Positions 1 to 45,990 are shown, counted from the first letter of the stretch. The stretch: 64,000 bases of DNA from Takakia lepidozioides (GCA_030704615.1 CM060734.1:58900001-58964000), one strand, 5' to 3'. The notes: a model not told the origin generated them from the sequence alone. Numbers and translations are program-made.

Positions 1-720
1 GTGTTGACATTAGCAACCAGCAAGCTAAAAGGTGCATGGGTTTTTGAGGGGAAACCCCCCAGAGGCAGATCGGTGTTGTTTTGTACTTACCACGATCTGT
101 TAACTGAGGGGAGGAAAGCGTGGTTCAATGTCTGTGCAGCTCTTCCCAAAACTTCGGAGCAACGAGGGAGGAAATTGCTTCAAGATTTCCACGACTCCCG
201 GGGCAAAGGCAGCTTGCTCGGCTCCAATATTTCCAACACACATTTTGCGTGGCACCAATCAATCCCCTCCCATTGGGAGGTCCCCTGGTGAAGGGGATGA
301 TGTTGATTACAATTGGCGGCACAGGCGGGCTAGGGACCCAAATTCCAAGCTCAGCTCAAGTTCTGAATGCAGCACATTTGTGTTCTGCTCCCCCAACTCG
401 CCTTCTCTCCCTCCCTGCTACTGAGAACACTCATGGACAGTATATCCCCAGCCACTCAGCACTCACTAGATAATCATCTAGTCTAGTAGGTCCTTCCTCT
501 TATCACCGCACTCACTTCATTCCCTCATCGCAATTCAAGCTCTCTGCTCTTCGTCTCTCTCTACCCCTCTGTAGCAAGCTGGCTAGGGTCTCGGGGGAGT
601 GCCCCCTTAGTAAGCCTTCACGGCCTTCCTTGGTGGTTATTTTTCCACTTTTGTGATACTTTATTTAAATAATTTGATTAAAAGGGTCTCCGTCCCCGTT
701 CTATCAAATAAATAAATAAA
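1..720 (+). mobile_element. Probable 3' remnant of a LINE (degenerate ORF2 C-terminus plus (AAAT)n tail)
   Basis: ORF 1-291 loosely resembles the LINE C-terminal region at 17220-17430; (taaa)n run at about 706-720. No RT motif visible. Confidence 0.3.
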
Positions 721-750
721 GAAGTGAATATTCCAATATTATGGAACCGG

Positions 751-784
751 CTGGTATTGAAAAATAATTGTTTTTCAATACCAG
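751..784. repeat. 14-bp perfect hairpin (ctggtattgaaaaa / tttttcaataccag), probably TE subterminal sequence
   Basis: Arms 751-764 and 771-784 are exact reverse complements; ccggctggtatt recurs at 788-799. Confidence 0.6.
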
Positions 785-1302
785 GACCCGGCTGGTATTA
801 TAAAAAGTAATACCCGCCCAACAGTGGTTTGGTATTATACCATACCCAAATACATACCACATAGGTTGCTGTTAACGCGCGTACGTAGATTTGAACCTTG
901 GCACGCTCACCTAGCCTAACGAAAGCGGCTCGATGGATGAGACATAGATGAAGTTAAGAGCATCCATCGTTGATCCATTCTTCTCTCTCCTCTCTCCTCT
1001 CGTCTCTCTCATGATCTCAACGGGGTATTGGAAAGGGTGATGTTTTGTTGAAGAGTGTGGACGTGCATTCTGCGAATGAGGGATGCTCTTTATTACACTT
1101 GGATTTGTGGAGTTGGACCCCTTCGCCTTGCTTTCCTTGGACTCTTCAGGCCTGCAGGCCTGTCTTATCTCAAAAGTGGAACTCTTAAATTGCTTTCTCA
1201 TGAGCCATGATTTAAACGGGAATTATGACTGATCTAGACTAGTGTGCATGCTGCATATAATTTCTACCTCTATAGACTGAAGTAGAGAGTCGTCGCTGGC
1301 GG

Positions 1303-4300
1303 CTACAGCTCACCAAAGACATCGGCAAAGTGATCCCACACGTAGTTCCCTACCTGTACCGGCCAGCCAAGAATATGAATGTATGTACAACTGTCAACAA
1401 TTTTACTCAAAAACATTCGTGCAAAGAATTAGAACGGTAGAATGAAAGCTTTTTATGCACACAGCCCAGAGATAGCCCACCGGAGCTTAATGCACTCGGT
1501 TGTACACATGCTAGATTGGAAACCAGGTGTAGAGAGTCTTGTTGTGTACCTTGAGTCCGATTTTGATGCCATCAAAAGCAGATTTTGGGAAGTGAACACC
1601 TCCATAGATCCTGCCAGGTTCACGCTCCAGATTAATGAGCACTCTTACAAACACACAATCAACTGGATTATTGTAGTAAGTGTGATTGGATTTTCAGTGG
1701 GATTGATCAGTTGACACAAGCTGGCAGTTTACCTTGCAAGAGAAGAGAGAGCGAGATAGAGCTCACATGAATAAATTGATTACAAGTTACCTGCTGAGAG
1801 CAACTTCGGTTTTAACGTCGTCGATGGTGTTGTATGTGCGGGGCGGCAGATAATATCCCTCAGATTGGACAACATATGGTCCATTGGGTGTTCTTTGGGA
1901 AGTTAATATGCTTAAGAATTTGGCCAGAACCATTGCCCAAGTGCCGGTGGGGGTACAATGAGTGCTTGGATACTCGGGGTGCGGTGGAGTACGTAGCACC
2001 GGTGTAAAGCTTGGGTCAGGCTTGTGTGTTGGATCGCCTTGCCTGAGTGTTCAAATAACGCAGCACTCGCAAAAATCGTCAGTCTTTGATACAATACTCT
2101 TCCTGAAGCAATTGCAAAGGAGAAATCATAGGGTCCAACCTGGAGAGAGAGAGGTTACTGCTGTGACCATGTCAAGACAAGATAATCTGACTGATTCAAA
2201 CACTTGATCTTTCTAGAATTTCATTAATTGCATCATCAGGCCCAGGCAGTTACTTTACAATCGAGATCTTTTTTATTTTCAGTTTACCGAGAGTTTACCT
2301 CTAGTCCTGGAGGTGGGTGGGAAGTTAGAGAGACTTAAACTATCCCAAGCTTCAGTTCCCACAACCCTATAAGCTTAACACTTAACACCACATTGACGGT
2401 CTAGCACTAAACAAACAAGACCACCAGCTCAGATGGAAGTCAAAGCTGCTGCCGAATACATGATGTATTTCCATTACCTAGATTATATATATCTTAAATT
2501 TACGTATCAACATCACTCGAGTTAATGAGGCTTGGTTGCTTGGCATAGAGTCTGGAAACCTCACGAAGGGCATTCTTGGTTGATAACAAGGTTAGGAGAA
2601 GAGACCCATCAAACAGCACAGCCACTGCTTGCTTATATCAAGATAACTTAGAGTAGGCAAAGACTCACATGCTCCCATACCAACCACAGCGCATCACACA
2701 GTGTGCAACAATAGGCGCTGGTGATTAGTGAGGAATAGCATGCAGGATAATTTTTTGGCGCCGCCTAGTTGTTATGATCCATGATGTACACCAAGGAAGA
2801 TAGTGGAATGGAGCAACTTAGTCTATCAGCCAAGGTTGCAAAGTTCTAGCAGATCAATGCATGCATAGGAAATTAGTTATAAGGAAACCTTAAATTAGCC
2901 CATGCTCTCTACGGAATAGTGCCCTTCTTGGGGATATCAATTGCTCCTCCTTCACACGCCTTGATTGAGGATAATTGGGACGTGGCTAGTGAGAGGCGGG
3001 AGAGATCCAACCTTCTTTGGAATCTAAGTTGGTGTGTAAAAAAGTCAGTGGTGACGGTAGTTACTCTCTGCGTCAAGTTTCGCATAAAGCCTATTAGTGC
3101 TGGCCACGCACAGTGGCTCATTTGGTGAGCCATGCTGCCAGCAGGAGTTTCGAGGCTCATGACTCTGGAATAAAAGTTCATAGTCTGTTGGGCCTCTCAC
3201 AATCTCTTTTGCGATTGGGAATTGGGGCTTGGTAGGTTAAAGTGGCATGTCATGCCACCTACTTGTTTTCTTCCTCCAGGAGGGTTTTCGGTTCTATTGA
3301 ATAAATCTCTTTCCTTTGCACTGCGGGGCCAAAAAAGAATAGTGCCCTCTAGGTGTAACCCGGGTGATGATTGGAGAAGAGGCCACGGATGTTGTCAATT
3401 TCTAGTTTCACCCACGTCCAGTATTCGATAGATTTTCCTTCCAGCTTAGATATATATATGCAGACTGAACTGCTCCTCTTCATACCCACACCACACCTTT
3501 GAGGCATAGAAAAGAGAGGTCCTACCCCAACTCGAGCCTTATATTAAGTGCTTCTAGAAACCTTCGGAATTGAGAGAGATCGGGTTGGCATGAGGATAGT
3601 TTGCAATCACTGAAGCCACCAACTAGTCGGTGGCTTGAGCAGGTTGGATAAAGAACGGAGTGCCACCCGGGTAACCTCGGGTAATACTGCCAGGCTCAAA
3701 TCCTACTACCTAGTTGTGTGCACGGTATTATCTTTCTTCCCTTCCCTTGGGCGGTGGCGCATCATGAGCCTTGTGCATGGTGAGGTCACTTTGATTTCTG
3801 AGGTCAGAGGTTATAAATCACTAGATGATTTCAAAAGCCAAATCCTTAATTTCCAGGGGTTACATGTGTCCTTCAGTAATGCCGTCTGGTCATCCTATTG
3901 CTCAGGGAAAAAGCATGAGGGCGGGCAAGTGGATAGAGGAGAGAGCACCTGAAGGCGGTGATGGGACGCCAGAATCGGTATTTGTCGTACATGTACCACC
4001 CCACAATGGAAGAATCGTATGCAGCCACACTGAGTGTCGCAAAGAGCTTGGATGTTTCCGGGAGGGTCAGATTTGGGCCGGTGATGCTCAAAGTGACGTT
4101 GAACAAATGACCCACAATAGTCGACGTGTCTGCAGCAGTACAGCATTGTAAGTTCAAATACGACCCATCTTGACAACTGGTGATCCCTGGAGCAATTAAA
4201 TAATCTTATGCATGCCCAGGGAACTTGCTAAGCAATTGAGTTTAGGCGAACGATAGAGTAGCAAGGTTTTGAGCTTAAACATACTTGCTGGATCTTCCCA

Positions 4301-5754
4301 GAACCTGGCTGTCTCCTTCTCAAACTCCGTCTGGACTGGCGAGTTTGCGTTTCCAACAGTAGCAACTATATGGTAGTTCTTATCATACTGTGCGCTCGGA
4401 ATCTTCAATGGACCTCCGAAAACGTCAAACTCTTTTGAAGATTTGATGACAAAAGGGAGAGTATGGCCCAATTGTGGGTAAAGAGCAAACGTCTGGTTAG
4501 GAGTGAATTGATACTCTCCTACAGGACCTCCCGGTGGAGCGGGACGAAACTTCGCCCAAGTCTGGCTTCCATCGAGTATTCTGCACAACAATGTCGATCA
4601 TAGTATAAGATCTAGTAATGCCTTGCAGAAACACTGTAAACACGATCTGATTATATTTCTTGGGTAGAGTCCTAAATGAATACTACATTAAATGTGGTTA
4701 ACAGGAAAAATTGAGGTCCCTCGGGACGGATTCGAAGATTTATATATGTACCTTTCGCGCAGAAGATCTTTGGCAAATTCAAAAGCCAGTCTCTGCGATT
4801 GGGCATCCTCTTCCTTTGAGAGGTTCAGTTTCGTTACTTGTGAGTCAATGACGCCGTCAAATATCGGCGACTGCTCTGCAGGAAAAAGTCTGCACAAGAG
4901 AGATTGACAAAATCAGCTTGTCCTGATCCTATCTCCTTTTCAAGATAAGGGCCTGATCACGGCCACTAATGGACTTTCTAAGCTCACTTCTCAAGAGCAG
5001 ATAGGGGTCCACATTTCGACTACTCCCACTAAGATTCAATGTCAAGAAATGTTCAAAGATATTCGTCCTTACTCCGAGAGGACATAGTGAGCAGCATATG
5101 CAGCAGCTGCTTCGGGATGCGAGAAGTCCTCGCGGTAGGCTGACTGAAGAGCCTTGTATTGTGAGAGGTGTACAAAGGAAAAAGTCCGAGAAGAGATCTG
5201 ACTTGGCAAACCTAGTGTGCGGATCACCTATGTACACAAGGCAGCCCAGATTTTAATGTGAGCTGAGAGATCCTCCTAGGTAGGTAGTGAATTACATATT
5301 CCTCGCGCTAGACAAAAACCCACATTGGATACAGGTCTCAATCTTGAACTAGCTTCAAAAGGCTGACACATGAGGACCTGTTATTCAAAATGAGCTAGCT
5401 AGTTGAACATTCTGACATCAAACGTTCACAACTTGTGTACTGAACATTTAGTACTAGATACAGGATTTTCTCAAGCTAGATGTGCGCTCAACTTTTATAA
5501 TGAACTGAACACTACTAATCTTCAATGACAGTTCATTACAACTAACCGGCGCAAGAGCTTGAGAAGTTGCGTTCAGTTCTAATGTGGTCATGGATCACGA
5601 GACGATCAACTCGTGCACTCACCCGCTGCGTCACTGCATTCCACTGCGTGACAACATTATCGACGCCTTCAATCACCAATCCAGAATCTGCACGAATGGA
5701 GCTCAAACTGAAAACCCACCCCGCCATCACTAACAGACACCAAGCTCGCCCCAT
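1303..5754 (-). CDS. Vanadium-dependent haloperoxidase-like / PAP2-superfamily protein with signal peptide; 8 exons, 421 aa
   Basis: Exons (-): 5754-5623, 5227-5073, 4889-4752, 4580-4285, 4129-3949, 2042-1791, 1610-1550, 1353-1303. Total 1266 nt, all introns GT..AG with matching phases, no internal stop. Protein: MGRAWCLLVMAGWVFSLSSIRA (signal-like), DNVVTQWN, EAAAAYAAHYVLSELFP, ETARFW, AAYDSSIVGWYMYDKYRFWRPITAFR, TPPHPEYPSTH, SRIYGGVHFPKSAFDG, VGNYVWDHF. These match the three PAP2/VHPO motifs (KX6RP, PSGH, SRX5H). Confidence 0.88.
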
Positions 5755-5853
5755 TTGCACCCGCATTCTCACAGTCCAAGACTAGATGGTAACAACGGTG
5801 TACAGCTCAGTGCAGTGTTGACGTTGCTCTCGCTACAAGTTCACCACTCACTC

Positions 5854-5860
5854 TTTTATA
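5854..5860 (-). promoter_or_regulatory. Candidate TATA box of the haloperoxidase-like gene
   Basis: TATAAAA on the minus strand about 100 bp upstream of the ATG at 5754. Confidence 0.5.
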
Positions 5861-5924
5861 AACTCTACTCATCACTATAGTAAGTCGTAGCGCACGTCCG
5901 GCTGCGTACTGGGAAACATCATGT

Positions 5925-6035
5925 AAACGACGACTTTTTTTAGGGTTAAAGGAAAGTCGTCGTTAAAGGGAAGTCGCTAAAGGAAAGTCCTTCCTATGAA
6001 CTTTCCTTAAACGACTTTCCTTTCCTTTCCCACAG
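5925..6035. repeat. Clustered short direct/inverted repeats (aaggaaagtc / gactttcc), TE-subterminal-like
   Basis: Several copies in both orientations within about 110 bp. Confidence 0.45.
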
Positions 6036-6464
6036 ACTTTTGTTTTGTTTTTTTCTTTTTCCCATACACTTAGGACTTAGTATGGAAGGACTATGGAAGT
6101 CACGTTCCACCTCTAAAAACAAAGTCAGGTTATTTTCTTTTTCATTTTTCAAGGGAAACACCTGGGAGCTGAAATTAGTGTGAAGTACTTATTGAATTGC
6201 ACATTCATGGCAGCTTGTTTATAAGTACTTTTAGCATTTAGGGTTTGTTGTTAACATTTATCCAAGGCCAGATTCCTGAAGGGAGTTTGACACACACTTT
6301 TATTTTAAATTTTTTGTGGGTGGAAGACCGTGAAGGGTGGAAGATAAGAGGAATAATGTAAGAACTTAATGCACACATGCAACCTCAGGACAGGATGGTA
6401 CGCGGTTTCCGGCATGTCAAATCTGCCCCACCCTCTCTTTAGAGTGAGATGGAACTGAAGGAGT

Positions 6465-6705
6465 GTCAACTCCAGTCGGGGTTACACTATGAGGTGTGTA
6501 ACTCCACTTGGGGTTACATCGGGTTACACGACGAGGTGTGTATCTCCACTCGGGGTTACACAGAATCGAGTGTAACTCCAATCGGTGTAACCCACACTTG
6601 GTCTCGAAATTTGACTAAGTCCAAATGTGGCTAAGTATAAAATGGACCAACCAGAGTTTCATGAAAAATTGGGGTTACAGAGGGTTACATCGACCGGGGT
6701 TACAC
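6465..6705. repeat. Array of ggggttacac / gtgtaactcc motifs in both orientations (TE subterminal repeats)
   Basis: About 10 copies visible, e.g. 6478, 6510, 6552, 6671, 6696 and inverted at 6496, 6570, 6586. Confidence 0.55.
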
Positions 6706-7460
6706 TGCCACAACCACCCATTAGGAACTCGTGACGGGTCCATCCCGCCCAGGTGGAGGTACTCGAAGACGACATCCCCATCATAAGCATCCGGCAAGAA
6801 CTCCACACGCTCAATAGGGACAGTCTCCTAGTCAATCCCCCGCAATTCACTCTGAAAACCGGGCATTCCTCCCATTGACTTCAGTTTTGGAATGACACTG
6901 ATGAGGTGTGTCACTTGCGGCTTGACGACCGGCGTTGTTTGCATAGAAATTGGGATGCTGGGAACGTCCTCGGAGGAGGAGTCTGAGAGCTCAACTATTG
7001 GGGTGGAAGTAGTGGTCTCCGTCTTCACGACAATATTCCTTTTCTCTTGAGCAACAGAACCAGCAGTTCCCGGGGAGACATACGAACCAATGGACTGCCG
7101 CCGAGGAGCTCCGACGACCCTGTATCTTCCTGGAGGCACTCTCCACTGACTCACAAGAGAATTTTCATCCGAATGAGTACTTGATGAACTTCCCATTGAC
7201 ATCGTAGACCTCTCTTTCGAGGAAAACAGTGTCAATCTGGTACTCGAAATGCGTTGCCAGGTGATGTTCCTGCAATTGTGTAACCATTGGAATCGGCATC
7301 CTTCGAGAAAGGGACAGGTTTCTCCACAGAGTAAAACTCCGCTTCAGAGGAACCCATGGTGAAGGACGAATAATTCCGAGCTAGACGAAGCTCGAAAGTG
7401 GAGAGGCCCACGATTTCCGTGCGACATCTGTTACAAACGGAGTGGATTTCGTTCATCAAT
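6700..7460 (-). pseudogene. Degenerate TE-associated ORF of unknown family
   Basis: ORFs 7232-7459 and 6828-7235 continue past a stop as ETVPIERVEFLPDAYDGDVVFE; adjacent to subterminal-like repeats. Confidence 0.3.
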
Positions 7461-8057
7461 AGTTGAGAGACAGTTAAAGAGTCCTTGAGGAACAGTTGTG
7501 TAAACAGATGTCAAGCAGTTATGTGCCTGCCCACACCCAGTGCAAAAGACGGCGGAACCGGAAAATCTGGGATACAATGCCTTTGTAATGTTTTCAGGCA
7601 CGTGGGCCCAGACATTGCATTCATAACACGGCTGCCAAAATGGGTGCAGAACCAATGAGAAGTTTTGAACCGCCGCAATGCACAAAATCCACTTGCACAT
7701 GTATGGACATCGGATCCAAGGTACGGCCACGAGGGGTGACGGCGGCCAGTGCCAAATGCACAAATGTTCATGTGCTACGTGGACACGTCTGAGGTGAACC
7801 CATGCATAACCATCGCAAGCAAGGCCCCGCCTGCATCCCCTCGTACAACGTCTCTGAGCCCAGCAGATCCTCATTTTCAAGCTGGAGACTAGCAAGAGAC
7901 TAAATTCCCACCGAGAGAGTGGTAGGCGTAGAAGGCAGTCTTTCTTCTTCACCTCAGCGCGATTTAGGAAGAGGGCGAGAGAGAGAATGAGAGGTCGCAA
8001 GCTGGATTTGACGCTTCAAGATATAGCAGAGGAGAGATCGCCCTGGAAACAGAACAC

Positions 8058-19752: not shown

Positions 19753-22700
19753 TTAGTAATCCCCACAAGAACAAATCCCATCTTCAAAGTGGTGAAAGCG
19801 GTTAGCGTCCCGTACAACAATTGCTCGGCCAACAATCTTTGAGATGAATTTGGTGGAGGTGTGGCAGTCACCACACACTCTAAGATTCTTGATGAGACGG
19901 AGAGGCGTCCTAGGGGTCGTGCTGATCAGCCCAAAACCAATGGCCAGCTTCTCACTGTGGTGGCAAAGAGAAAATTCCTTTTCCTCCTCCCCCACATCAT
20001 GCACAAAGCGCGTGTCAGGCACATACCCCGTCTCCTTCATCTGCCCAGACAATCTTCTCAGCTCAGCATGGATTTCCTTAATTCTGGGATGCAACTTGTC
20101 ATCTACAACAAAGGTGTGCACCCTGTTGCCAACCTCAATGCAGCAGCGACCTGGCTCCTTTCTAACCCCTCTGACCTTCATCATTCTTCTCACCTTTGCA
20201 GTATCATCCCACCTGCCAGCTGCAGCATAGATGTTTGAGAGCAACACATAAGTCGCGGCATCCTATTCATCCCACGTGAGGACAGATGTTGCCGCACGTT
20301 CAGCCATCTCCACATTGCCATGGATTCTGCAGGCACCAAGCAAGGCCTTCCACACCACAGCATCTGGATTGATTGGCATTTTATTAATCAGGTCCACCGC
20401 CTCATCCAGTTGTCCCGCACGTCCAAGAAGGTCCACCATGCAGCCAAAGTGCTTTACTGTTGGAGTGACACCATGATCTTGACTCAGGGAAGCAAAGTGG
20501 CGTCTTCCTTCATTCAGTAGGCCAGCGTGGCTGCATGCTGAGAGAACAGAAACAAAGGTGATACTGTCCGGCTTCATGCCGTTCTTTTGCATTCCTTCAA
20601 ACAGTTGCACGACCTCCCTATGACAACCATGCTGTGCATATCCTGAGATCATCGCGTTCCACGACACCACATTTCGTTCAGCCATATTGTCGAACACTGC
20701 CTTTGCATCCTCGATGCACCCACATTTCGCATACATGTCCACGAGGGTATTGTTCAGAATCACATCTGGTACAATTCCAGCTTTGGCGATGCAACCATGC
20801 ATCTCTTTGCCCTTTTCCAGGGCTGCCAGGCTTGCACACGCACTGCAAACGCACACAAACGTGATGTGGTCGGGCTTCACCCCTTCCCCCATCATTTCCT
20901 CATAGGTCTCCAAAGCCTCCATTCCGCGCCCCTGCTGTGCATATCCTGTGATCATCGCGTTCCACGACACCACATTTCGTTCAGCCATATTGTCGAACAC
21001 TCCTTTTGCATCCTCGATGCACCCACATTTGGCATACATGTCCACGAGGGTATTGTTCAGAATCACATCTGGTACAATTCCAGCTTTGGCGATGCAACCA
21101 TGCACCTCTCTGCCCTCTTCCAGGGCTGCCAGGCTTGCACATGCACTGCAAACGCACACAAACGTGATGTGGTCAGGCTTCACCCCTTCCCCATCATTTC
21201 CTCATAGGTCTCCAAAGCCTCCTTCCCGCGCCCCTGCTGTGCATATCCTGCAATCATCGCGTTCCACGACACCACATTTCGTTCAGCCATATTGTCGAAC
21301 ACTCCCTTTGCATCCTCGATGCACCCACATTTGGCATACATGTCCACCAGGGTATTGTTCAGAATCACATCTGGTACAATTCCAGCTTTGGCGATGCAAC
21401 CATGCACCTCTTTGCCCTTTTCCAGGGCTGCCAGGCTTGCACACGCACTGCAAACGCACACAAACGTGATGTGGTCCGGCTTCACCCCTTCCCCCATCAT
21501 TTGCTCATAAGTCTCCAAAGCCTCCATCCCGCGCCCCTGCTGTGCATACCCTGCGATCATCGCGTTCCACGACACCACATTTCGTTCAGCCATATTGTCG
21601 AACACTTCTTTTGCATCCTGGATGCACCCACATTTGGCATACATGTCCATGAGGGTGTTGTTCAGGATGACATTTGGTACAATTCCAGCTTTGGCGATGC
21701 AACCATGCATCTCTTTGCCCTTTTCCAGGACTCCCAGGCTTGCACACGCACTGCAAACGCACACAAACGTGACGTGGTCGGGCTTCACCCCTTCCACCAT
21801 CATTTGCTCATATGTCTCCAAAGCCTCCATCCCGCGCCCCTGCTGTGCATACCCTGTGATCATCGCGTTCCACGACACCACATTTCGTTCAGCCATATTG
21901 TCAAACACTCCTTTTGCATCCTGGATGCACCCACATTTGGCATACATGTCCACGAGGGTATTGTTCAGCATCACATCTGGTACAATTCCAGCTTTGGCAA
22001 TGCAACCATGCAACTCTTTGCCCTTTTCCAGGACTCCCAGGCTTGCACACGCACTGCAAACGCACACAAACGTGATGTGGTCCGGCTTCACCCCCTCCCC
22101 CATCATTTCCTCATAGGTCTCCAAAGCCTCCTTCCCGCGCCCCTGCTGTGCATATCCTGTGATCATCGCGTTCCACGACACCACAGTTCGTTCAGCCATA
22201 TTGTCGAACACTCCCTTTGCATCCTCGATGCACCCACATTTTGCATACATGTCCACCAGGGTATTGTTCAGAATCACATCTGGTACAATTCCAGCTTTGG
22301 CGATGCAACCATGCACCTCTTTGCCCTTTTCCAGGGCTGCTAGGCTTGCACACGCACTGCAAACGCACACAAACGTGATGTGGTCCGGCTTCACCCCTTC
22401 CCCCATCATTTCCTCATAGGTCTCCAAAGCCTCCTTCCCGCGCCCCTGCTGTGCATACCCTGCGATCATCGCGTTCCACGACACCACATTTCGTTCAGCC
22501 ATATTCACGAACACTCCTTTTGCATCCTCGATGCACCCACATTTCGCATACATGTCCACGAGGGTGTTGTTCAGGATCACATCTGGTACAATTCCAGCTT
22601 TGGCGATGCAACCATGCACCTCTTTGCCCTTTTCCAGGGCTGCCAGGCTTGCACACGCACTGCAAACGCACACAAACGTGATGTGGTCGGGCTTCACCCC

Positions 22701-23894
22701 TTCCCCCATCATTTGCTCATAGGTCTCCAAAGCCTCCATCCCGCGTCCCTGCTGTGCATACCCTGCGATCATCGCGTTCCACGACACCACATTTCGTTCA
22801 GCCATATTCACGAACACTCCCTTTGCATCCTCGATGCACCCACATTTCGCATACATGTCCACCAGGGCTGTGTTCAGGATGACATCTGGTACGATTCCAG
22901 TTTTGGCAATGCAACCATGCACCTCTTTGCCCTTTTCCAGGGCTGCCAGGCTTGCACACACATTGCAAACGCACACAAACGTGATGTGGTCGGGCTTCAC
23001 CCCTTCCCTCATCATTTGCTCATAGGTCTCCAAAGCCTCCATCCCGCACCCCTGCTGTGCATACCCTGCGATCATCGCGTTCCACGACACCACATTTCGT
23101 TCAGCCATATTGTCAAACACTCCCTTTGCATCCTTGATGCACCCACATTTCGCATACATGTCCACCAGGGCAGTGTTCAGGATGACATTTGGTACAATTC
23201 CAGCTTTGGCGATGTCGCCATGGACCTCTTTGCCCTTTTCCAGGGCTCCCAGGCTTGCACACGCATTGCAAACGCACACAAACGTGATCTGGTTGGGCTT
23301 CACCCATTCACGCACCATTTGCTCATAGGTCTCCAAAGCATTCCTACCACACCCATGCTTGGTAAATCCTGCCAACATTATATTCCACGTGATCAAAGAT
23401 CGTTGAGGCATTCTGTTGAACACTTGGTGAGCATCCATGATGCTCCCGCACTTAACATACATGTTGACAAGGGTGTTGAGTAGAAAAACATTTGGCGTGA
23501 ATCCACTTTGGATAATGTGAGTGTGCACCTGCTTTCCAGCTTCCAGGCCTTTCAACTTGATGCACTTATGCAAGAGACAGACATACGTATCTGAATCTGC
23601 TGAAATGCCTCCTTGGTTTAAAGCCTGTAGAGCCTCTTTCAGTCTGCCTGCCTCACAAAGCATCTTCACATGCCCAGGAGTGCCAGAAGAGGCATTGGGG
23701 AGTCGCTCTCTTGATCCTCTTCCAGAAGCCGTGGTCATGGTTGAGGTGCCTGATTTTATCAACTGTGCCGCTGCAGCTGCTGCCTTTAGTTGACCATCTA
23801 CCCATGCAGGTTTCTTGTAGCTATTGATGCACAGGGAATCATAGGTAATCTTGTGCTTGAAATCTGGCCCTCTTGGACGAATCTGGACACACAC
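19753..23894 (-). pseudogene. PLS-E1-E2-DYW PPR RNA-editing factor pseudogene with expanded PLS array
   Basis: ORFs 21180-23894, 20263-21183 and 19753-20247 are collinear with the 27682-30315 protein. Lesions: 1-nt deletion at about 21190, CAG>TAG at 20263-20265, one-codon deletion (RFVHDV), and a 4-nt deletion removing the terminal Trp (GDY*). Confidence 0.93.
20680..23110 (-). repeat. Tandem 303-bp PLS-triplet repeats (8 QQG-type units)
   Basis: 101-aa period (P 35 + L 35 + S 31), near-identical at the DNA level. Confidence 0.95.
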
Positions 23895-27500: not shown

Positions 27501-27693
27501 GTGAATGCCTGTTGGATTACAGAGAGTAGCAGATGCAATTGAGCATAGGAACTAGTGTGATAAGTTGAGTTGGGTGTTTCCTAGAACAAATCTAGGCTGT
27601 CATTGTCGGCTGCTAGCAGCAAGGCAAGGATGTCTGCATGATTTGTGCAGAGTCATGGATAGCTGAAGGAGCAGGGATAGAGTGTGGGTCCAG

Positions 27694-30315
27694 ATTCATC
27701 CAAGAGGGCCAGATTTCAAGCACAAGATTACCCATGATTCCCTGTGGATCAATAGCTACAAGAAACCTGCATGGGTAGATGGTCAACTAAAGGCAGCAGC
27801 TGCAGCAGTACAGTTGATAAAATCAGGCACCTCAACCATGACCACGGCTTCTGGAAGAAGATCACGAGAGGGAGTCCACAATGCCTCTTCTGGCACTTCT
27901 GGGCATGTGAAGATGCTTTGTGAGGCAGGCAGACTGAAAGAGGCTCTACAGACTTTAAACCAAGGAGGCATTTCAGCAGATTCAGATACGTATGTCTGTC
28001 TCTTGCATAAGTGCATCAAGATGAAAGGCCTGGAAGCTGGAAAGCAGGTGCACACTCACATTATCCAAAGTGGATTCACGCCAGATGTTTTCCTACTCAA
28101 CACCCTTGTCAATATGTATGTTAAGTGCGGGAGCATCATGGATGCTCACCACGTGTTCAACAAAATGCCTCAACGATCTTTGATCACGTGGAATATAATG
28201 TTGGCAGGATTTACCAAGCATGGGTGTGGTAGGAATGCTTTGGAGACCTATGAGCAAATGATGCGTGAATGGGTGAAGCCCAATCAGATCACGTTTGTGT
28301 GCGTTTGCAGTGCGTGTGCAAGCCTGGGAGCCCTGGAAAAGGGCAAAGAGGTGCATGGTTGCATCACCAAAGCTGGAATTGTACCAGATGTGATTCTGAA
28401 CAATACCCTCGTGGACATGTATGCCAAATGTGGGAGCATCGAGGATGCAGAGGGAGTGTTCAACAATATGGCTGAACGAGATGTGGTATCGTGGAACACG
28501 ATGATCGCAGGGTATGCACAGCAGGGGCACGGGATGGAGGCTTTGGAGACCTATGAGCAAATGATGGGGGAAGGGGTGAAGCCCGACCACGTCACGTTTG
28601 CGTCCGTTTGCAATGCTTGTGCAAGCCTGGCAGCCCTGGAAAAGGGCAAAGAGGTGCATGGTTGCATCGCCAAAGCTGGAATTGTACCAGATGTCATCCT
28701 GAACACAGCCCTGGTGGACATGTATGCCAAATGTGGGTGCATCAAGGATGCAAAGGGAGTGTTCGACAATATGGCTGAACGAAATGTGGTGTCGTGGAAC
28801 ACGATGATCGCAGGGTATGCACAGCAGGGGCGCGGGATGGAGGCTTTGGAGACCTATGAGCAAATGATGGGGGAAGGGGTGAAGCCCGACCACATCACGT
28901 TTGTGTGCGTTTGCAGTGCGTGTGCAAGCCTGGCAGCCCTGGAAAAGGGCATAGAGGTGCATGGTTGCATCGCCAAAGCTGGAGTTGTACCAGATGTGAT
29001 TCTGAACAATACCCTCGTGGACATGTATGCGAAATGTGGGTGCATCGAGGATGCTCAAGGAGTGTTCGACAATATGGCTGAACGAACTGTGGTGTCGTGG
29101 AACGCGATGATTGCAGGATATGCACAGCAGGGGCGCGGGATGGAGGCTTTGGGGACCTATGAGCAAATGATGGGGGAAGGGGTGAAGCCCGACCACATCA
29201 CGTTTGTGTGCATTTGCAGTGCGTGTGCAAGCCTGGCAGCCCTGGAAAAGGGCAAAGAGGTGCATGGTTGCATCGCGAAAGCTGGAATTGTACCAAATGT
29301 GATTCTGAACAATACCCTCGTGGACATGTATGCGAAATGTGGGTGCATTGAGGATGCAAAGAGAGTGTTCGACAATATGGCTGAACGAAATGTGGTGTCG
29401 TGGAATGCGATGATCGCAGGATATGCACAACATGGTTGTCATAGGGAGGTCGTGCAACTATTTGAAGGAATGCAAAAGAACGGCTTGAAGCCGGACAGTA
29501 TCACCTTTATATCTGTTCTCTCTGCATGCAGCCACGCTGGCCTACTTAATGAAGGAAGACGCTACTTTGATTCCCTGAGTCAAGATCATGGTGTCATTCC
29601 GACAGTAAAGCACTTTGGCTGCATGGTGGACCTTCTTGGACGTGCGGGACAACTGGATGAGGCGGTGGACCTGATTAATAAAATGCCAATCAATGCAGAT
29701 GCTGTGGTGTGGAAGGCCTTGCTTGGTGCCTGCAGAATCCATGGCAATGTGGAGATGGCTGAACGTGCAGCGACATCTATCCTCACGTGGGATGAACAGG
29801 ATGCCGCAACTTATGTGTTGCTCTCAAACATCTATGCTGCAGCTGGCAGGTGGGATGATACTGCAAAGGTGAGAAGAATGATGAAGGTCAGAGGGGTTAG
29901 AAAGGAGCCAGGTCGCTGCTGCATTGAGGTTGGCAACAGGGTGCACACCTTTGTTGTAGATGACAAGTTGCATCCCAGAATTAAGGAAATCCATGCTGAG
30001 CTGGGAAGATTGTCTGGGCAGATGAAGGAGGCGGGGTATGTGCCTGACACGCGCTTTGTATTGCATGATGTGGGGGAGGAGGAAAAGGAATTTTCTCTTT
30101 GCCACCACAGTGAGAAGCTGGCCATTGGTTTTGGGTTGATCAGCACGACCCCTAGGACGCCTCTCCGTCTCATCAAGAATCTTAGAGTGTGTGGTGACTG
30201 CCACACCTCCACCAAATTCATCTCAAAGATTGTTGGCCGAGCAATTGTTGTACGGGACGCTAACCGCTTTCACCACTTTGAAGATGGGATTTGTTCTTGT
30301 GGGGATTACTGGTGA
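27694..30315 (+). CDS. PLS-class PPR protein with E1-E2-DYW cytidine deaminase domain (C-to-U organellar RNA editing factor); main exon
   Basis: Open frame with 17 L/S/P motifs, PG box KEPGRCCIEV, HSEKLA, CGDC and terminal DYW. The track's GTG start at 27682 probably lies in an intron (27501-27693, GT..AG); splicing it out joins WWDNRGKK to IHPRGPDFKHK. Confidence 0.95.
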   Translation: MHPRGPDFKHKITHDSLWINSYKKPAWVDGQLKAAAAAVQLIKSGTSTMTTASGRRSREGVHNASSGTSGHVKMLCEAGRLKEALQTLNQGGISADSDTYVCLLHKCIKMKGLEAGKQVHTHIIQSGFTPDVFLLNTLVNMYVKCGSIMDAHHVFNKMPQRSLITWNIMLAGFTKHGCGRNALETYEQMMREWVKPNQITFVCVCSACASLGALEKGKEVHGCITKAGIVPDVILNNTLVDMYAKCGSIEDAEGVFNNMAERDVVSWNTMIAGYAQQGHGMEALETYEQMMGEGVKPDHVTFASVCNACASLAALEKGKEVHGCIAKAGIVPDVILNTALVDMYAKCGCIKDAKGVFDNMAERNVVSWNTMIAGYAQQGRGMEALETYEQMMGEGVKPDHITFVCVCSACASLAALEKGIEVHGCIAKAGVVPDVILNNTLVDMYAKCGCIEDAQGVFDNMAERTVVSWNAMIAGYAQQGRGMEALGTYEQMMGEGVKPDHITFVCICSACASLAALEKGKEVHGCIAKAGIVPNVILNNTLVDMYAKCGCIEDAKRVFDNMAERNVVSWNAMIAGYAQHGCHREVVQLFEGMQKNGLKPDSITFISVLSACSHAGLLNEGRRYFDSLSQDHGVIPTVKHFGCMVDLLGRAGQLDEAVDLINKMPINADAVVWKALLGACRIHGNVEMAERAATSILTWDEQDAATYVLLSNIYAAAGRWDDTAKVRRMMKVRGVRKEPGRCCIEVGNRVHTFVVDDKLHPRIKEIHAELGRLSGQMKEAGYVPDTRFVLHDVGEEEKEFSLCHHSEKLAIGFGLISTTPRTPLRLIKNLRVCGDCHTSTKFISKIVGRAIVVRDANRFHHFEDGICSCGDYW

Positions 30316-36140: not shown

Positions 36141-39100
36141 GCAACACGGGCAAAACCACATTTTTCAATATACGCAGGGAAAGGGGATCCTGATGTACAC
36201 ATTAGCCAATTTCAGCACATGTGTATTGTGAACAATGAGAATGGCGATGATGCCAAGATGAGACTGTTTCCTTGTTCACTTATCAAGAAAGCAAGTGAAT
36301 GGTATGCAAGATTTCCAGCTAATCATTTCCTAACCTAGAATGGCCTTAGTACGGCATTCCGGAACAGGTTCAGGACAAGCAAAACTGAGGATGAAGTGTA
36401 TGGAAGTTTACAACAATTCAGGCAAAAGAAGCATGAAACTGTTGAGGAGTACATGGAAAAGATGGAGTTAATGATGAAAAATCTGACTGCTGTACCAGCG
36501 CCAGGGTTACAGAAGACCTGAATTGTGAGTGGACTAAGACCAGAGTTGCAAAAGAAAGTGGATATGTTACCCTATAATACAGTGGAGGAGGCATTTGAAA
36601 CAGCCAACAGGATTGAGCAATTGGGAATGCTCATAAGAGATAAAAGGGATGATGATGACTCTGAGGATGAGTCAGATGAGGAAGAAGAGCAAGAGCTCAA
36701 AAGGAAGAGTAAGAAGAAGAAAAGTTGAAGAGGGAAAACTATGAAAAAAAGGCTGGAGGAGATCTTGAAGAAGTATGCCACGGAGGCTGCAACACATTGG
36801 AGGAATGGTGTTTGGTGTGCAAAATACCAGAATGAAGGCCATACCGCAGCTGAATGCTACATGAAGGAGAAACACTGTACTATCTGTAAAATGGATAACC
36901 ATTCTACTGAGAATTGTTACTACAACATAAGAACAGCTGCAAGAGAACCTAGGCAAGTAAGGGTGCATCAAGTGCAGCCCCAGCCAAGAAGAAACAATGA
37001 TCAGGACCACTATGGAAGGCTTGGTGGTTATAACAATGGTATGGAAAGGAGAGGTAATCCAAGAGGGAATTACCAAGGCAATCCCAGGGGCAACTATCAG
37101 GGTAATCCAAGGGGGAATTACCAGCCAGGGAATCAGGATTACAGAAATAATCCCAGAGCAGATCAAGGGCGAGGACCCAATGGTGAAGAACTGTGTTACT
37201 ATTGTAATCACGCAGGACATTGCAAGGCAGCCTGTTCATTCTGGATTAGACACCAGAATGAGATGAGAGCTCCTGTGAATGAGGGGCCAGTGGTGGCAGC
37301 TCACATGGTTAGGCCATGTGTTGTATCAGAAGTAAGTACAATGATAGTAACCAGAAGCAAAGCTAAATTAATACCTCTAGTAGATGAGGAAGATGATGAT
37401 AATGAAGATGGCAGTGATGTGCCTGAAGATGATGAGGCTTGGAGAGATGAGAAGGAACTGCACAAGGAAGTGGCTGATACCAAAAGGGAAATGCAGAAGA
37501 GTACTGATATCCCTATGGCAGATTCCTCTGTTTCTGGAAGAGAAGATGAAGAGAGTGAAGATGAAGTGAAGAAAGAAGTTGCACAAGTGCAGGGTAATGA
37601 AGGGACTTTGGCTGAAGTAATATGTGAGTCCAAGGCGGAGATTACCATTGGACAACTATTGGTTGTGGCACCTCATTGTAGGCACAGGCTGTATCAAGCA
37701 ATCAATCAGATTGCCCATGTGACAGAGAACACAGGCGTGAACAGCTGGGTGACCAGTTATAATGTGAAGCCGGAAGGGCGAGAAACAGTCATGGACTTTG
37801 ATGATTCTATGCCAGTAATCCAATTGAGAATTGGAAGCACAGACCTGACTGATGTACTGATAGATGGAGGCTCTGGAGTGAATATCATGACAGACCAATT
37901 AAGGTTGAAGCTTGGTCTAAGTAACATGAAACCAGCCCCATTCACAGTAACAATGGCAGATCAAAGAAGTGTTCAGCCATTAGGCTTGATAAGAGGAGTC
38001 AAGATACAGATTCAAAAGATGATCTTTAAGATCACAGTGACTGTATTGAAAATGGATGATGTCATGGAAGCTTACTCCTTATTGTTGGGTCGACCATGGC
38101 TGAGACAGGCCAGGGTATTCCATGACTGGAATTTCCAGTTGCTAACTGTGCATGATGGGAAGCGCAAGATACAAATCACCACTAAGAAATCTAGTAGACT
38201 ACCTGCTACGAGAAGACCTCGAGGAGTCAGAGAGTATGACTGGAGAAAAGGACTTGATGAGGAGCAGGAAGCTACCCTGTTCGCTGCACACCTAGAGTGG
38301 GAGCAGGTTGCAGAAATGCAACTGGAAGGCCTAAGTTGTTTAAAAGGTATCTGTTGTGGTGTAGTAACAGCAACACCAATTGAGGGTGAAACAAGTAGTT
38401 ACCCACCACATTTCTATGAGGAAAGAGAGGGAGAAATGGAAATCCTAGAAGAACTAGCCACTGTAAGTTTACATGATGAAGTAGTGATTGGTTGGACAAT
38501 CACAGCTGATGAGCAAGTGAGAGAAGTGAATGTAGGAACTGAGAAGGAACCGAGAATGGTGAAAGTAGGGGCTGACTTGGAGCCAGAATTCTTTGAGGAA
38601 GCTAAGAGTATGTTCATCAATACAGAGATGTATTTGCTTAGAGCTATGAGGATTTGAAAGGGATACCACCTGAGATCTGTCAGCATAAGATTGAACTGGA
38701 ACCAAGGTCAGTACCAATCAAACAGGCAAGGTACAGAATGAATCCCAACTATGCACAGAAGGTTGGGGAAGAGATCAAGAAGTTGGCTGAGGCTAAGTTC
38801 ATATACCCGATAGAGAATACAACTTGGTTGTCACCCATTGTGATAGTTCCCAAGAAGAATGGTAAACTGAGAGTTTGTGTAAACTATAAGAAGTTGAATG
38901 CTTGTACAAAGAAAGATCCCTTCCCTTTGTTATTCACAGAAGCGGTGCTGGACACTATGGCAGGCCATGAGATGTACTCATTCATGGATGGCTTCAGTGG
39001 GTATAGCCAAGTGCAAGTGGTAGAAGAAGACCAGGAAAAGACAGCTTTCATCACAGATTGGGGTGCTTATGCATACAAAGTCATGTCTTTTGGACTTTGT

Positions 39101-41599: not shown

Positions 41600-44500
41600 G
41601 TGACAGGTGGATGCGGGTTAACGTCAGAAAAGTGGTTGGCGGGTGAAAGGACAGCTTGGAAGTCAAACTCGAAGAATGTGCCACGCGGACAGGGGAAGAC
41701 GGAGGCATGTCTAAAAACGAACACGTGGCCACTAGGGCGAAGCACACCGCGGTGCATATATTGCAAAAGTGGGTGTCATCATGCCAGAGGACAAACAGGG
41801 CCGTCAAAGTACCTAACCGGTACAGCAGCCAAAACTATTTGTGGGCCCATTAATGCATTCAGGGCAAAGGTAACGAAACCCTTTACGAATACAAAAAAAG
41901 GGGACTTTTGCCACATGTGTTGTCCTAGTGGACATTCCAGGTGGGAATGTCCACTGAGGAGGGTAAAGTTAAGAAGTTACCCAAGGAGGCAACAGCCAAT
42001 CAGGAGCGAGAATTTCATGCAGGTGGTTCCCTCTAAGGAACAAGAACAAGAAATTAGAAGAGTTATGAGCGGAAGAGTCGGGGTGACTCCGAATAACCAG
42101 TGTCTCGACGGGAGGGGCAATCAAAGCTATAGCTTTGTAGTTGTGGCGGATATTACAGATTATACGCTCGCTTTACTTCTTACGCAGTGGCGCAAGGACA
42201 GACGGGTTGAGAGTACATTCTCTCTCACTCGATACTCGCAAGCCCCACATGCTTACACGCACTTACCCATTCCATTATGTGCCAACCATACTTTTATGCT
42301 CTACGCCTTGCAAGCTTTCTTAGAGCTATTTCAAACAAGGCCATCTTGTTTGTCTGGAATGAAGAGAATTCGGGGAATGGAGGATGTCAGGGTGAAGAGC
42401 ACCACGATTATGCAGAAGCAGACAATTGCTACACCTCAGGCAGTGCAGTTGTGGAAGGAGTTGCGATTGGAGGGACTGCTACGCAAGGAATGGTCCTTGC
42501 ATCATAGGGCGTTCATGATACAATTCATTCAGAACTTTGAACCTCAGACGGGAGTTACACAAGTGAGGGGAGTAGATATAGAGATTATTCCCCAATACTT
42601 ACAGCAATTGTTTGAATTGCCATCAGGCCGTGTAAATGTCGATGAGCACAGGGCAAGATTGCAGATAGGCAATTTGTTCCAAGAAGGGAGTTTCATTAAG
42701 ACTCAGGGATACACTTGCACCAAGGCCGAGTACACAGGGTTAAAAGAAGTTGGTCAGGTTCTGAACGTTGTGTTTGCCATGAAACAAAACCAACAATACC
42801 TTAGCAGATCCTACACGGAGGAGTTACTGAAAGCCTTGAGGGGGGAAGATGTGGCTTGGGCGGACTTAATGTACAATGGTTTGGTGGAAGAGATGAAGCG
42901 CTTACAAGGCACTGCTGCTAAATCTCCAATCATTGTGTTTGGCCCAGTGATTGCGCAAATTATTCTTGATTCTTGCATACTTGATGCGCGAGAACGTAAG
43001 GAGATGGGAGTGTTTGAGACAACAACCACTGCAATTGAGGAGCATGGCTCTTCACATGGTGAAGGTGGATTGGAAGGGCGGCACCAGTCCAAGAGACAAA
43101 AGAGGGACACGACTATAGTGGCAGATCCACTAGCTTCAAGGAAACCGCAAAATGATGATATTTCCATAGCTCTTGTGCAAGATGGGGAACAACAACACCG
43201 AGGGCTGTTATTACTGGAAGCACAACCTTTGGAGAGGGAAGAAGAAGTCACTTCAATACCACAGCCATCACAGCCAGTTGACTCGGTTGTCTCAGAGGTC
43301 CCTTAGTTAGTACATGTTGTTGCACCAGAGCCTATTGCCCTGGAAGGAGAAGTGTTGGACATCCCACTACAGAGCAGGTCGTGGCAGACATTGAGAAGGG
43401 TGACCTTCTCTATGAAAACTCTGGCTTGGTCAGGGAACCAGTGGTACCAGAGGTGCAGAGTTTGTCCAAGGAAATCCCTGCTGTGCATGTAATACCCAAA
43501 CCTTTGGCGGAGGTTCCGGAGGTAGAATGTAAGGGCACTGCAGCGCCTGTGGAGAATGGGGTCGTTCAGGAAGAGGATCTTGTGGGAACATGGCCTGAAT
43601 GGTTGGTGAAACATCACACTGTGGAGGATCAGGGAGAATAGCAGCAAGTTCACCAGGAAGATCCACATCAGGCCATGCTTATGAGTTCTATAAGCAGGAC
43701 ACTCAATTTGTTGGGCACTTATGTGAAATCCCATGTTCCATCTACACAATTGGCACCTTTGAGGGAGGAACTCAAGCAGGAGTGTGAGGCTAGAATTGCC
43801 ACTGAGTGTGCAAACAAGGTGGATGTGGAGGCCAACCTCAAGTTGCAGAAAGAATTGGAGGACACCGAGGCTGTCCTGCAGCTAGCAAAGGGGAATCTGA
43901 TTGAAGCAGGTCTGGAGCAGGGGAAATTGCATGAAGCACATAAGCAGCAGCTATACCAATTACAGGTGCAGCATGAGGGCAAATTGCAGGAAGTGAAGCT
44001 GCTTCATACAGAGTTGGAGACAGTTCATCAGAGAATGACCATACAATGTGCCACACTAACAACTGTTCTGGAGCAAACTGCGTTAGAAGTTAACAGACAA
44101 GCAGAGAGATGTATGATGGCCGAGGCTGAGATAGTAGAGCAAGGGAAACTTATTGCTGATCTGAAGGCTACTCTCCGTCGCAATGAGGATACTTTTCAAC
44201 AATACAGTCAGGTTGAGGCTGAGAAGGAAAGTTCATCCTGCAGTTGCAGCAATCACTCACGGGCCACAAGAATGAACTCTTTGTGGCTAACAAGGCTTGG
44301 AAGGAAGCCAATAATCTGGCTGCTGCCTATGCGGCCCTGGTTGAACCTCATGCAAAGCGCATGGAGGCTTTACAGTAGCAATTAGATGTGTACAGACTCA
44401 AGGAGGAGCAGGCTCTCAAGGGTGCTACACAGGACTTGGTGGATAATCATCTTATGCAAGTATGGTTAATACAAGGCCCGGTAGAAGGGAAGGCACCACG

Positions 44501-45990
44501 GAAGCTCACTCAGGGGGAGATGAATGATCTTAGATTGCAGGTGCAGAACATTGCCACAACTACTATAGACAATGTTTATAGTAGGATAGCGGAGTTACAT
44601 GATGATTTGGAAGGCCTGCAAACTCAAGTGGATGACCTGAGTTTCAATATTGAAAAAAAAAATCTTTATTCCTAAGGAGCAGCTGGTGGCTATTTATTTG
44701 CATGCCATGACTCTGATTTTCCAGTCTTCATCACAGGAGGTGCAAGAGTTGTCAGCAGTAGGAGGGACAGCGGCGGCAATATCACAACCTCTACAACAGG
44801 TGGCTGTGCAGGTGGCTGACGCTGTTGATACCATGGCGCCACCACAGTCTGAGGTTTGGGGGGATGTTGCTTTCAACCCACCTAGGAGTCCTGCTACGTG
44901 GGAGTACAATCAGGCTATGATTATGCCATTCAACCAAATTCCCATTGTGATGGATTTGGCTTGGAAGGAATTCAGTCCTCCACAATCTTTGGCACATTAT
45001 TACCAGATCATGCGCATTTGGTTGCTAGTGGCAACTCGGACTAAGGTTCTTCCAAACAATCGACCCATTGAGGATCATCATTTTGCAAGGTACTGGTCTG
45101 AGGCAAGCACTATGCTGAAGGAATTAATTGCCTTCCAGGTTGTTCATGGGTACATCTACACCAAGACCAAGGAGATATCTAGTATTGTCATGGGCTGTGG
45201 ATTGTACTATGCTGCTTGTTTCATGGCACGTTATCACATTGAGCAGCAGAAGATGCAATCACAATTTTTGAGTTATTCCAGTGGGGATCATTGGGTCTTA
45301 CCTTCAGTTCCGCCCCATATGTATCTATATGATGCGAAAGTCATGATGCAGAAGGATTCCCAGCTTCGTTCATGGTTTAATTTGGCTTGGAACAACTTGG
45401 TCAAAGAAAAATTGGGCCCTGATGATATTTTCTATAAAGGACATGAAGCTTGGAAATACTTACACTATTCCAAAGTCATTGGCACACCTCTCACCTATAC
45501 GGCCAAGGAGTTCAGGAAGTTCACTCATTTTGCTTGCAAGCGTTTACAACAAGTAGTACAGTTTAAGCTTCCATACTTGGTGGGCCAACATTGTATGCCA
45601 CGCAGGATTCCGGAGGAGCCACTTAAAGTTCGGCCGCCAAAACACCTCAGGGAGGAAGATGATTCTGATACTACTGGTTCTTCAGAGGAACCTTTAGACA
45701 TGGCGGAGGACTATGCACTCCAGATGGCAGAGAAGAAACAACGGGGATCTCCTATGCCTGAGAGGTTACCTCGTTATCAACCACAGGTGGGTCAGACATT
45801 TCCATTTGGTGCTCAATCACCTCCATCCGCCAGTGACAGGGCTCGAGCTCGCACACAGAGCCCTTCAGGAGACTCGCACCATCAGAAGGGTGCTCGCTCA
45901 CAAAGGTTTGCTGATCCTAAGCAGTACACCGTGAGGACACGACTTTTTGAGAGGGGGAGGGGTAATTTTAGAGGGCTGTTTGGGACATAG
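41600..45990 (+). pseudogene. Long extra sense ORF(s) between integrase and PPT (unknown function; CCHC knuckle and coiled-coil-like segment)
   Basis: Consecutive ORFs 41600-43306, 43381-43641, 43675-44385, 44388-44675 and 44650-45990. Confidence 0.6.

Follow-up and report, generated by a model that had tools for sequence, protein, structure and literature searches.

An intron-rich vanadium-haloperoxidase-like gene of Takakia lepidozioides with tyrosine at the position of the motif-I lysine

The 64,000-nucleotide stretch of Takakia lepidozioides DNA analysed here (the window) carries, on its minus strand between positions 5754 and 1303, an eight-exon gene for a 421-amino-acid (aa) protein of the superfamily that unites vanadium haloperoxidases (VHPOs) and PAP2 phosphatases. 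With a probability of about 0.8, taken jointly, we consider this gene to be a functional-looking nuclear orthologue of a green-plant VHPO-like family (domains VCPO_2nd and PAP2) and the family to have been inherited vertically since before the chlorophyte/streptophyte split, being kept in algae, bryophytes and lycophytes. To our knowledge, the vanadium haloperoxidases characterised so far are algal, fungal or bacterial. The orthogroup to which the window gene belongs is conserved, intron-bearing and probably secreted, extends from chlorophytes to lycophytes and is seemingly absent from seed plants. Its members are already in public databases; judged from the aligned proteins, what is new here is a lysine-to-tyrosine substitution in the active site that is seen in no aligned relative.

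Gene model and transcript evidence

The gene model was derived from a six-frame translation of positions 1200-5900, which gave a chain of open segments; exon borders were set by motif, alternative acceptors were enumerated, and one combination was clean. The eight exons join into a 1266-nt coding sequence that is translated into 421 aa and a TAG stop with no internal stop, and in the model rebuilt from the window sequence all seven introns are of the GT..AG type with matching phases (Table 1). This reproduced exactly the intact, intron-rich gene that had been proposed in an earlier, sequence-only reading of the window, including its canonical splice sites, and the motif strings quoted there were all present, as VTQWN, AAAAYAAHY, FWEDP, FWRP, TPPHPEYPSTH and SRIYGGVHF. 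Such a structure would not be expected to arise by chance. Several alternative borders were rejected: an acceptor at 4875 introduced 12-15 stops, while exon-7 acceptors at 1643 or 1624 and an exon-8 acceptor at 1390 disrupted either motif III or the C-terminus that is conserved. Within the window, no further copy of the gene was found.

The gene is transcribed and spliced. A public run (X1) contained 21% of the sampled words of 1200-5900, which is approximately the exon share of that stretch, and its contigs were spliced, with skips of 196, 180, 1906, 155, 183 and 395 nt that equal introns 7, 6, 5, 4, 2 and 1, respectively. Six of the seven junctions, for which the sequence-only reading had suggested a check by transcripts, were matched exactly by these contigs, which also run into both untranslated regions (UTRs). 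The seventh, that of intron 3, falls between two X1 contigs and is spanned by none of the contigs listed. Its borders were accepted because they are GT..AG, because the protein alignment across them is gap-free, and because the lengths of the flanking exons (138 and 296 nt) are identical in four annotated orthologues; the intron is also independently supported by the conservation of its position across orthologues.

Family, fold and descent

Database searches were run exon by exon, and the joined 421-aa model was compared with fetched proteins by alignment only. Exon 6 alone matched 4CIT, the vanadium iodoperoxidase of Zobellia (E=1.4e-3), and also algal bromoperoxidases, over the stretch TPPHPEYPS.H, exon 5 alone matched the Curvularia inaequalis chloroperoxidase (CiVCPO) across the K353-R360 helix, and an exhaustive phmmer search with exon 4 returned 103 relatives, the best of which was a 428-aa protein (E-value 1.6e-37). 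The single exons are too short for Pfam and NCBIfam, and no match to either was significant, the strongest being that of exon 6 to PAP2 (E=0.12). Exon 4 gave noise only against the PDB, and Rfam showed no family within positions 1-8000. A SemiSWEET match on exon 5 was dismissed as chance, with 19.7 bits against a cut-off of 100.

When a profile of 20 family members was compared with the PDB, the best match was 4CIT, nearly full length (1.3e-54 over residues 57-449), followed by XhnO11, NapH3, NapH1 and CiVCPO. The AlphaFold model of the Sphagnum orthologue, which is 60% identical to the window protein, was used as a proxy for the fold (pLDDT 91.7). Superposed on 4USZ/4CIT or on CiVCPO, this model reached a template-modelling (TM) score of 0.75 in each case; of its two bundles, class A acid phosphatases covered only one (TMq ~0.35). 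The precomputed Pfam families of the orthologues are VCPO_2nd (PF22778) and PAP2 (PF01569). The window protein is therefore placed among the two-helical-bundle members of the VHPO/PAP2 superfamily, and its nearest solved relative is the Zobellia iodoperoxidase 4CIT. Both the profile match and the Sphagnum model agree with the earlier description of a VHPO/PAP2-like protein of compact, bacterial-type layout.

The solved relatives differ in how much of the window protein they resemble. The Zobellia galactanivorans enzyme (VIPO; 4CIT/4USZ) is, like it, a compact two-bundle monomer (~410-460 aa) with the motif layout K-x6-RP, PSGH, SRxxGGxH. Unlike it, VIPO is an intronless enzyme of a marine bacterium, has Phe in place of the plant-clade His322 (FPEY versus HPEY) and keeps the motif-I lysine, and identity in the structural alignment is ~18-20%. 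The Streptomyces proteins NapH1 and NapH3, together with XhnO11 (3W36, 8CXL, 9L8X), share the C-terminal catalytic bundle (profile 1e-21 to 1e-28, TMq 0.67-0.69), and NapH3 illustrates that non-halogenating chemistry is possible on the VHPO fold. These proteins are longer (~480-530 aa), align over their C-terminal two thirds only, and lie in natural-product biosynthetic clusters, whereas there is no such context around the window gene. CiVCPO (1VNC/1IDQ; TMq 0.75) is larger still, at 609 aa, with extra elements. Class A acid phosphatases (E. blattae, PhoN, PhoC) have a three-motif oxyanion site like that of the window protein, and their single bundle superposes on the C-terminal bundle (TMt ~0.6); at ~220-250 aa, however, they consist of one bundle, to which the plant protein adds a VHPO-type N-terminal bundle.

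The N-terminus of the window protein consists of a basic MGR, a hydrophobic core at residues 4-17 (Kyte-Doolittle ~2.0) and a polar SLSSIRA/DSG stretch. The signal-peptide-like, hydrophobic character noted previously was thus recovered, and the N-termini of the orthologues are equivalent and hydrophobic in all cases. In the Sphagnum model a low-confidence N-terminal helix precedes a folded domain that starts at about residue 30. There are five N-x-S/T sequons in the window protein. From its sequence and the orthologue model, the protein likely enters the secretory pathway.

Orthologues were found across early-diverging land plants. They were named through searches that took full-length relatives from the exon searches as queries. 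An end-to-end alignment paired residues 8-421 of the window protein with a Sphagnum protein of 420 aa at 60% identity (E-value reported as 0.0), and identities of 57-61% over the full length were obtained for orthologues from Sphagnum spp., Riccia (R1sor_010103 and R1flu_010158), Marchantia (M. polymorpha MPTK1_2g09150, P0132; M. paleacea Mapa_003822), Ceratodon (M758_11G145400), Physcomitrium (A0A7I4CC44) and the lycophyte Diphasiastrum (O6H91_13G102500). Like the window protein, these orthologues are of 411-434 aa, with an eight-exon structure and motifs II and III, and many have Thr at the position of CiVCPO Gly403. They are annotated as hypothetical, as PAP2/haloperoxidase-domain or as 'membrane-associated phospholipid phosphatase'. 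Green-algal homologues (Klebsormidium, Coccomyxa, Myrmecia, Chlorella ohadii, Parachlorella and Volvox) were 32-42% identical, and bacterial homologues reached at most ~34%, many of the bacterial and metagenomic proteins being annotated as vanadium-dependent haloperoxidase or PAP2. In total there were 470 matches at E<=1e-20, mostly metagenomic or bacterial, and the named ones are among the best 120.

In a quick maximum-likelihood tree of 66 rows, all green sequences formed one clade (support 100) containing a land-plant subclade (100) with the window protein, and the bacterial and metagenomic rows lay opposite. A more careful tree of 35 rows gave the same arrangement, with 100/100 for the green clade and 100/100 for a land-plant clade of 14 rows that includes the window protein. 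Within land plants the window protein was placed weakly beside Sphagnum (81/38), and its root-to-tip length was typical of the land-plant clade. The tree is unrooted, and hence silent on an entry of the gene from bacteria into the green lineage before the green-plant ancestor.

Intron positions were compared using the genomic loci of six homologues, each protein being mapped exactly onto its own DNA. The genes of Marchantia, Sphagnum and Ceratodon have eight exons each, with a variable first exon followed by exons of 155, 138, 296, 181, 246-252, 61 and 51 nt, as in the window gene. Each of the window gene's seven introns has a counterpart at the same alignment column and phase in Marchantia, Sphagnum, Ceratodon and Diphasiastrum, and introns 3-7 (5/7) also have one in Klebsormidium and in the chlorophyte Coccomyxa. 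The 181-nt exon 5 recurs in both of these algae, the 61-nt exon 7 is present in all six compared genes, and the phase-2 intron 6, which splits the codon of Arg385 (the equivalent of CiVCPO Arg490), is conserved in six of six. Because a land plant and a chlorophyte have introns in common, the gene was already present, with introns, in the common ancestor of green plants. The annotated Diphasiastrum complanatum orthologue (L002:3001-3425) agrees in its other exons but has an additional 9-nt first exon and a 254-nt intron that are absent from the other orthologues; this exon may be an annotation artefact or reflect a lineage-specific 5' intron.

Active site and possible chemistry

The active site of CiVCPO is made up of Lys353, Arg360, Ser402, Gly403, His404, Arg490 and His496 (PMC10278073, PMC9144378). 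In an alignment of 170 family members, Arg360 corresponded to Arg295 of the window protein (column R in 165), Ser402 to Ser327 (S in 151), His404 to His329 (H in 160), Arg490 to Arg385 (R in 162) and the vanadate-binding His496 to His391 (H in 160). The equivalent of Gly403 is Thr328 (PSTH), in a column with G in 127 members and T in 23, including most of those from green plants; on this alignment Thr328 is a trait of the clade. Trp285 and His322 stand at the positions of the halide-pocket residues Trp350 and Phe397/His411, respectively, with Phe397 being the CiVCPO residue at the place of His322.

By contrast, the equivalent of Lys353 is Tyr288, in a column that holds lysine in 164 of the 165 relatives aligned, and without exception in the 33 sequences of the green clade. 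Motif I (K-x6-RP) therefore retains Arg295-Pro296 and has tyrosine rather than the canonical lysine at position -7, so that the earlier description, which listed all three motif regions, needs correction in that motif I is incomplete. Since the motif-I lysine is absent, the protein was not classed among the bona fide VHPO enzymes. No gap interrupts the local alignment, with GWYQKYKYLFWRP in Marchantia against GWYMYDKYRFWRP in the window protein, and a single-base sequencing error is unlikely because two base changes are needed to turn an AAR lysine codon into TAC. A word-index search with exon 5 found no short fragments of close relatives with Tyr288.

Tyr288 lies in a cluster of unusual residues, 287-292 (window 3975-3992, minus strand). 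Met287 (-8) stands where Gln is usual in the green clade; Asp289 (-6) occupies a position filled in every relative by Tyr, Phe, Asn, His or Gln (Tyr or Phe in the land-plant orthologues); and Arg292 (-3) replaces a Leu that is found in 27 of 33 green-clade sequences. Arg292 is at i+4 from Tyr288 and would be on the same face if the helix extends that far. It is conceivable, from the sequence, that the positive charge has been relocated from Lys(-7) to Arg292, while Lys290, which is common in the clade and two residues from Tyr288, probably points elsewhere. Over its whole length the protein keeps 102 of the 109 columns in which 12 other land-plant sequences do not vary, and the seven private changes compare with 1-10 in other lineages.

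In canonical VHPOs, the histidine equivalent to His391 holds vanadate, hydrogen peroxide makes peroxo-vanadate, and hypohalous acid arises by oxidation of a halide; the equivalent histidine of PAP2 phosphatases becomes phosphorylated. In the mechanism we propose, a cleavable signal peptide would direct the protein to the secretory pathway (apoplast or vacuole), the five sequons could be glycosylated there, and a pocket formed by Arg295, Ser327, Thr328, His329, Arg385 and His391 would hold a tetrahedral oxyanion, either vanadate or phosphate. The replacement by Tyr288 of the lysine that in CiVCPO hydrogen-bonds the oxyanion or peroxide would be expected to leave catalysis weakened or changed relative to the orthologues, because the residue that polarises the bound oxyanion or peroxide is absent. 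Lys353 mutants of CiVCPO are said to lose most chlorinating activity, reportedly in work of Hemrika and colleagues from 1999. The protein could, tentatively, be poorly active or non-catalytic. It might still be a halide-oxidising vanadium enzyme, or might be mainly a phosphatase or other hydrolase, each of which we regard as doubtful.

Several observations weigh against the view that this is a functional-looking, vertically inherited member of a secreted VHPO-like family. The catalytic lysine is missing, and canonical VHPO or PAP2 catalysis may consequently not occur; its loss in this copy also weakens the roles in halogenation or apoplastic phosphatase chemistry that the sequence-only reading had suggested. 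The chemistry is inferred from distant bacterial and fungal relatives with ~20-30% identity, and the searchable literature contained neither a tested activity for any member of the green-plant clade nor a functional study of the orthogroup. The signal peptide was judged from how hydrophobic the N-terminus is and from a helix that has low confidence in the orthologue model. Regarding the transcripts, the RNA label of X1 is a guess, though spliced contigs are hard to explain otherwise, and the X1 contig differs from the window by two letters in its exon-5 piece (3948-4129), at positions that are not listed; owing to these two unplaced differences, the Tyr288 codon is incompletely verified in RNA. 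One further letter, likewise at an unlisted position, differs in the exon-6 piece. Finally, no seed plant, fern or hornwort was among the named matches (within the best 120 of 470), and no dedicated genome search was made; seed plants appear to have lost the family, which fits the sequence-only suggestion that the gene was 'patchily retained'.

That same suggestion had offered horizontal acquisition as the other possibility. A recent transfer from bacteria into the source land-plant lineage, with introns gained later, might be argued from a family that by match count is overwhelmingly bacterial, from the seeming lack of the gene in seed plants and from the compact bacterial-type layout. It is, however, very improbable: orthologues are present in land plants (liverworts, mosses and a lycophyte) and in algae (one streptophyte, and chlorophytes), which is largely the distribution that the sequence-only reading had itself named as counting against transfer; the window protein falls within a 100/100 land-plant clade that itself lies within a 100/100 green clade free of bacterial sequence; and its identity to bacterial proteins is at best ~34%, compared with 57-61% for bryophytes and the lycophyte. 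Acquisition by land plants is refuted by the introns that they have in common with a chlorophyte, given agreement in site and phase at 7/7 introns with four other land plants and at 5/7 with two green algae. A second alternative concerns this copy only. It could be decaying or catalytically dead, being transcribed while heading for loss or kept as a binding protein, and here the replacement of a lysine that is otherwise near-invariant (164/165) is joined by the radical changes around it (M for Q at -8, D for Y/F at -6 and R for L at -3), by an intron 5 swollen to 1.9 kb and by the apparent loss of the family from other plant lineages. Decay is nonetheless unlikely, given that the eight-exon frame is open, the splice sites are canonical, spliced transcripts are present, the branch is of ordinary length, and the protein retains all other oxyanion ligands together with 102 of the 109 columns that are invariant in land plants.

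An orthologous and vertically inherited gene could also be one of an entire green-plant clade of secreted acid phosphatases, which would apply PAP2 chemistry to phosphate esters and would not be vanadium haloperoxidases. VHPOs and PAP2 acid phosphatases have identical active-site residues, apo-VCPO dephosphorylates according to the title of PDB entry 3BB0, public labels of the orthologues name PAP2 as well as haloperoxidase domains or a 'membrane-associated phospholipid phosphatase', and terrestrial and freshwater habitats are poor in halides. Set against this are the two-bundle VHPO architecture, with the nearly full-length match to VIPO where class A phosphatases match one bundle only, and the presence of His322 and Trp285 at halide-pocket positions of algal bromoperoxidases and CiVCPO; architecture and pocket are no proof of activity, and we hold a clade of phosphatases to be possible, with considerable reservation. 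Less probable than either decay or a phosphatase clade is that the green clade consists of genuine secreted vanadium haloperoxidases in which this copy has been rewired, with the charge moved to Arg292 and a Tyr hydroxyl at the oxyanion, towards an altered halide preference or new chemistry. Two published leads were discarded: a survey of horizontal transfer names 'haloperoxidase' and gives no detail, and a GreenCut entry proved to be DUF212, a different family.

Under our preferred reading of a conserved green-plant orthologue, the Marchantia or Physcomitrium member would be the target for finding out whether vanadium-peroxide chemistry is in use in early-diverging land plants or the fold works in them as a phosphatase. 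The window copy, as a natural Lys-to-Tyr variant at a residue considered essential, would be a useful comparison and probably does not represent a new kind of system. If the members of the clade are genuine secreted VHPOs, they would give algae, bryophytes and lycophytes a way, so far unrecognised, of making halogenated or oxidised metabolites, along with a use for apoplastic hydrogen peroxide.

Feature coordinates, intron 5 and the surrounding window

Table 1 Features of the VHPO-like gene, in window coordinates.
Feature	Position	Strand	Support or remark
5' UTR	5755..5823, minimum extent	-	X1 contig record 3 colinear from 5823 to 5619
Exon 1, 132 nt; start codon ATG at 5754; encodes residues 1-44, of which ~1-22 are signal-peptide-like	5623..5754	-	donor GTGAGT; junction 5623/5227 in spliced contig
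Exon 2, 155 nt	5073..5227	-	both borders in spliced X1 contig record 3; 155-nt exon also in orthologues
Exon 3, 138 nt	4752..4889	-	acceptor 4889 contig-confirmed; donor 4752 unspanned, 138-nt exon same in orthologues
Exon 4, 296 nt	4285..4580	-	donor 4285 contig-confirmed; 296-nt exon same in orthologues
Exon 5, 181 nt; motif I (WYMYDKYRFWRP)	3949..4129	-	both borders contig-confirmed
Tyr288 codon 3989-3987; Arg295 codon 3968-3966	exon 5	-	motif I
Intron 5, 1906 nt	2043..3948	-	spliced contig skips exactly 1906 nt
Exon 6, 252 nt; motif II (TPPHPEYPSTH)	1791..2042	-	both borders contig-confirmed
His322 at 1981-1979; Ser327-Thr328-His329 at 1966-1958	exon 6	-	motif II
Arg385 codon, split across intron 6 (1792, 1791 / 1610)	exons 6-7	-	motif III
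Exon 7, 61 nt; motif III (SRIYGGVHF); His391 at 1594-1592	1550..1610	-	both borders contig-confirmed
Exon 8, coding part, 51 nt, including TAG at 1305-1303	1303..1353	-	acceptor contig-confirmed; 51-nt exon same in land-plant orthologues
3' UTR	1200..1302, at least to 1200	-	X1 contig record 1 covers 1200-1350 and continues past the examined stretch

Intron 5 is the part of the gene that departs most in length from its counterparts, being ~8-15 times longer than in Marchantia, Sphagnum, Ceratodon and Diphasiastrum (129-258 nt). Separate contigs of X1 and X2 matched it at 3117-3159 and 3239-3275 only, which suggests that these segments are a fragment of a dispersed, transcribed repeat. No copy of intron 5 elsewhere in the window and no clear terminal repeats were found; one weak inverted pair was present, with 23-nt arms at 78% complementarity (2742-2764 / 3323-3345).

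Upstream of the gene, ~0.7 kb from its 5' end, positions 6479-6591 contain a 42-nt unit rich in GGGTTACAC, in two copies (90% match) that are followed by a degenerate 15-nt periodicity. Further into the window there are two long pentatricopeptide repeat (PPR) genes, at 21180-23894 (minus strand) and 27682-30315 (plus strand), the second with an E, an E+ and a DYW deaminase domain; editing factors of the DYW type would speak against a marchantiid liverwort as the source. At 36741-38657, 41600-43306 and 44650-45990 (plus strand) and 55964-57421 (minus strand) there are four open reading frames, 446-638 aa long, that showed no Pfam family at E<=0.001. The first three of these fall where GC and AT skew are both strongly positive (36-44 kb), and the open reading frames of this region may be transposon-related.

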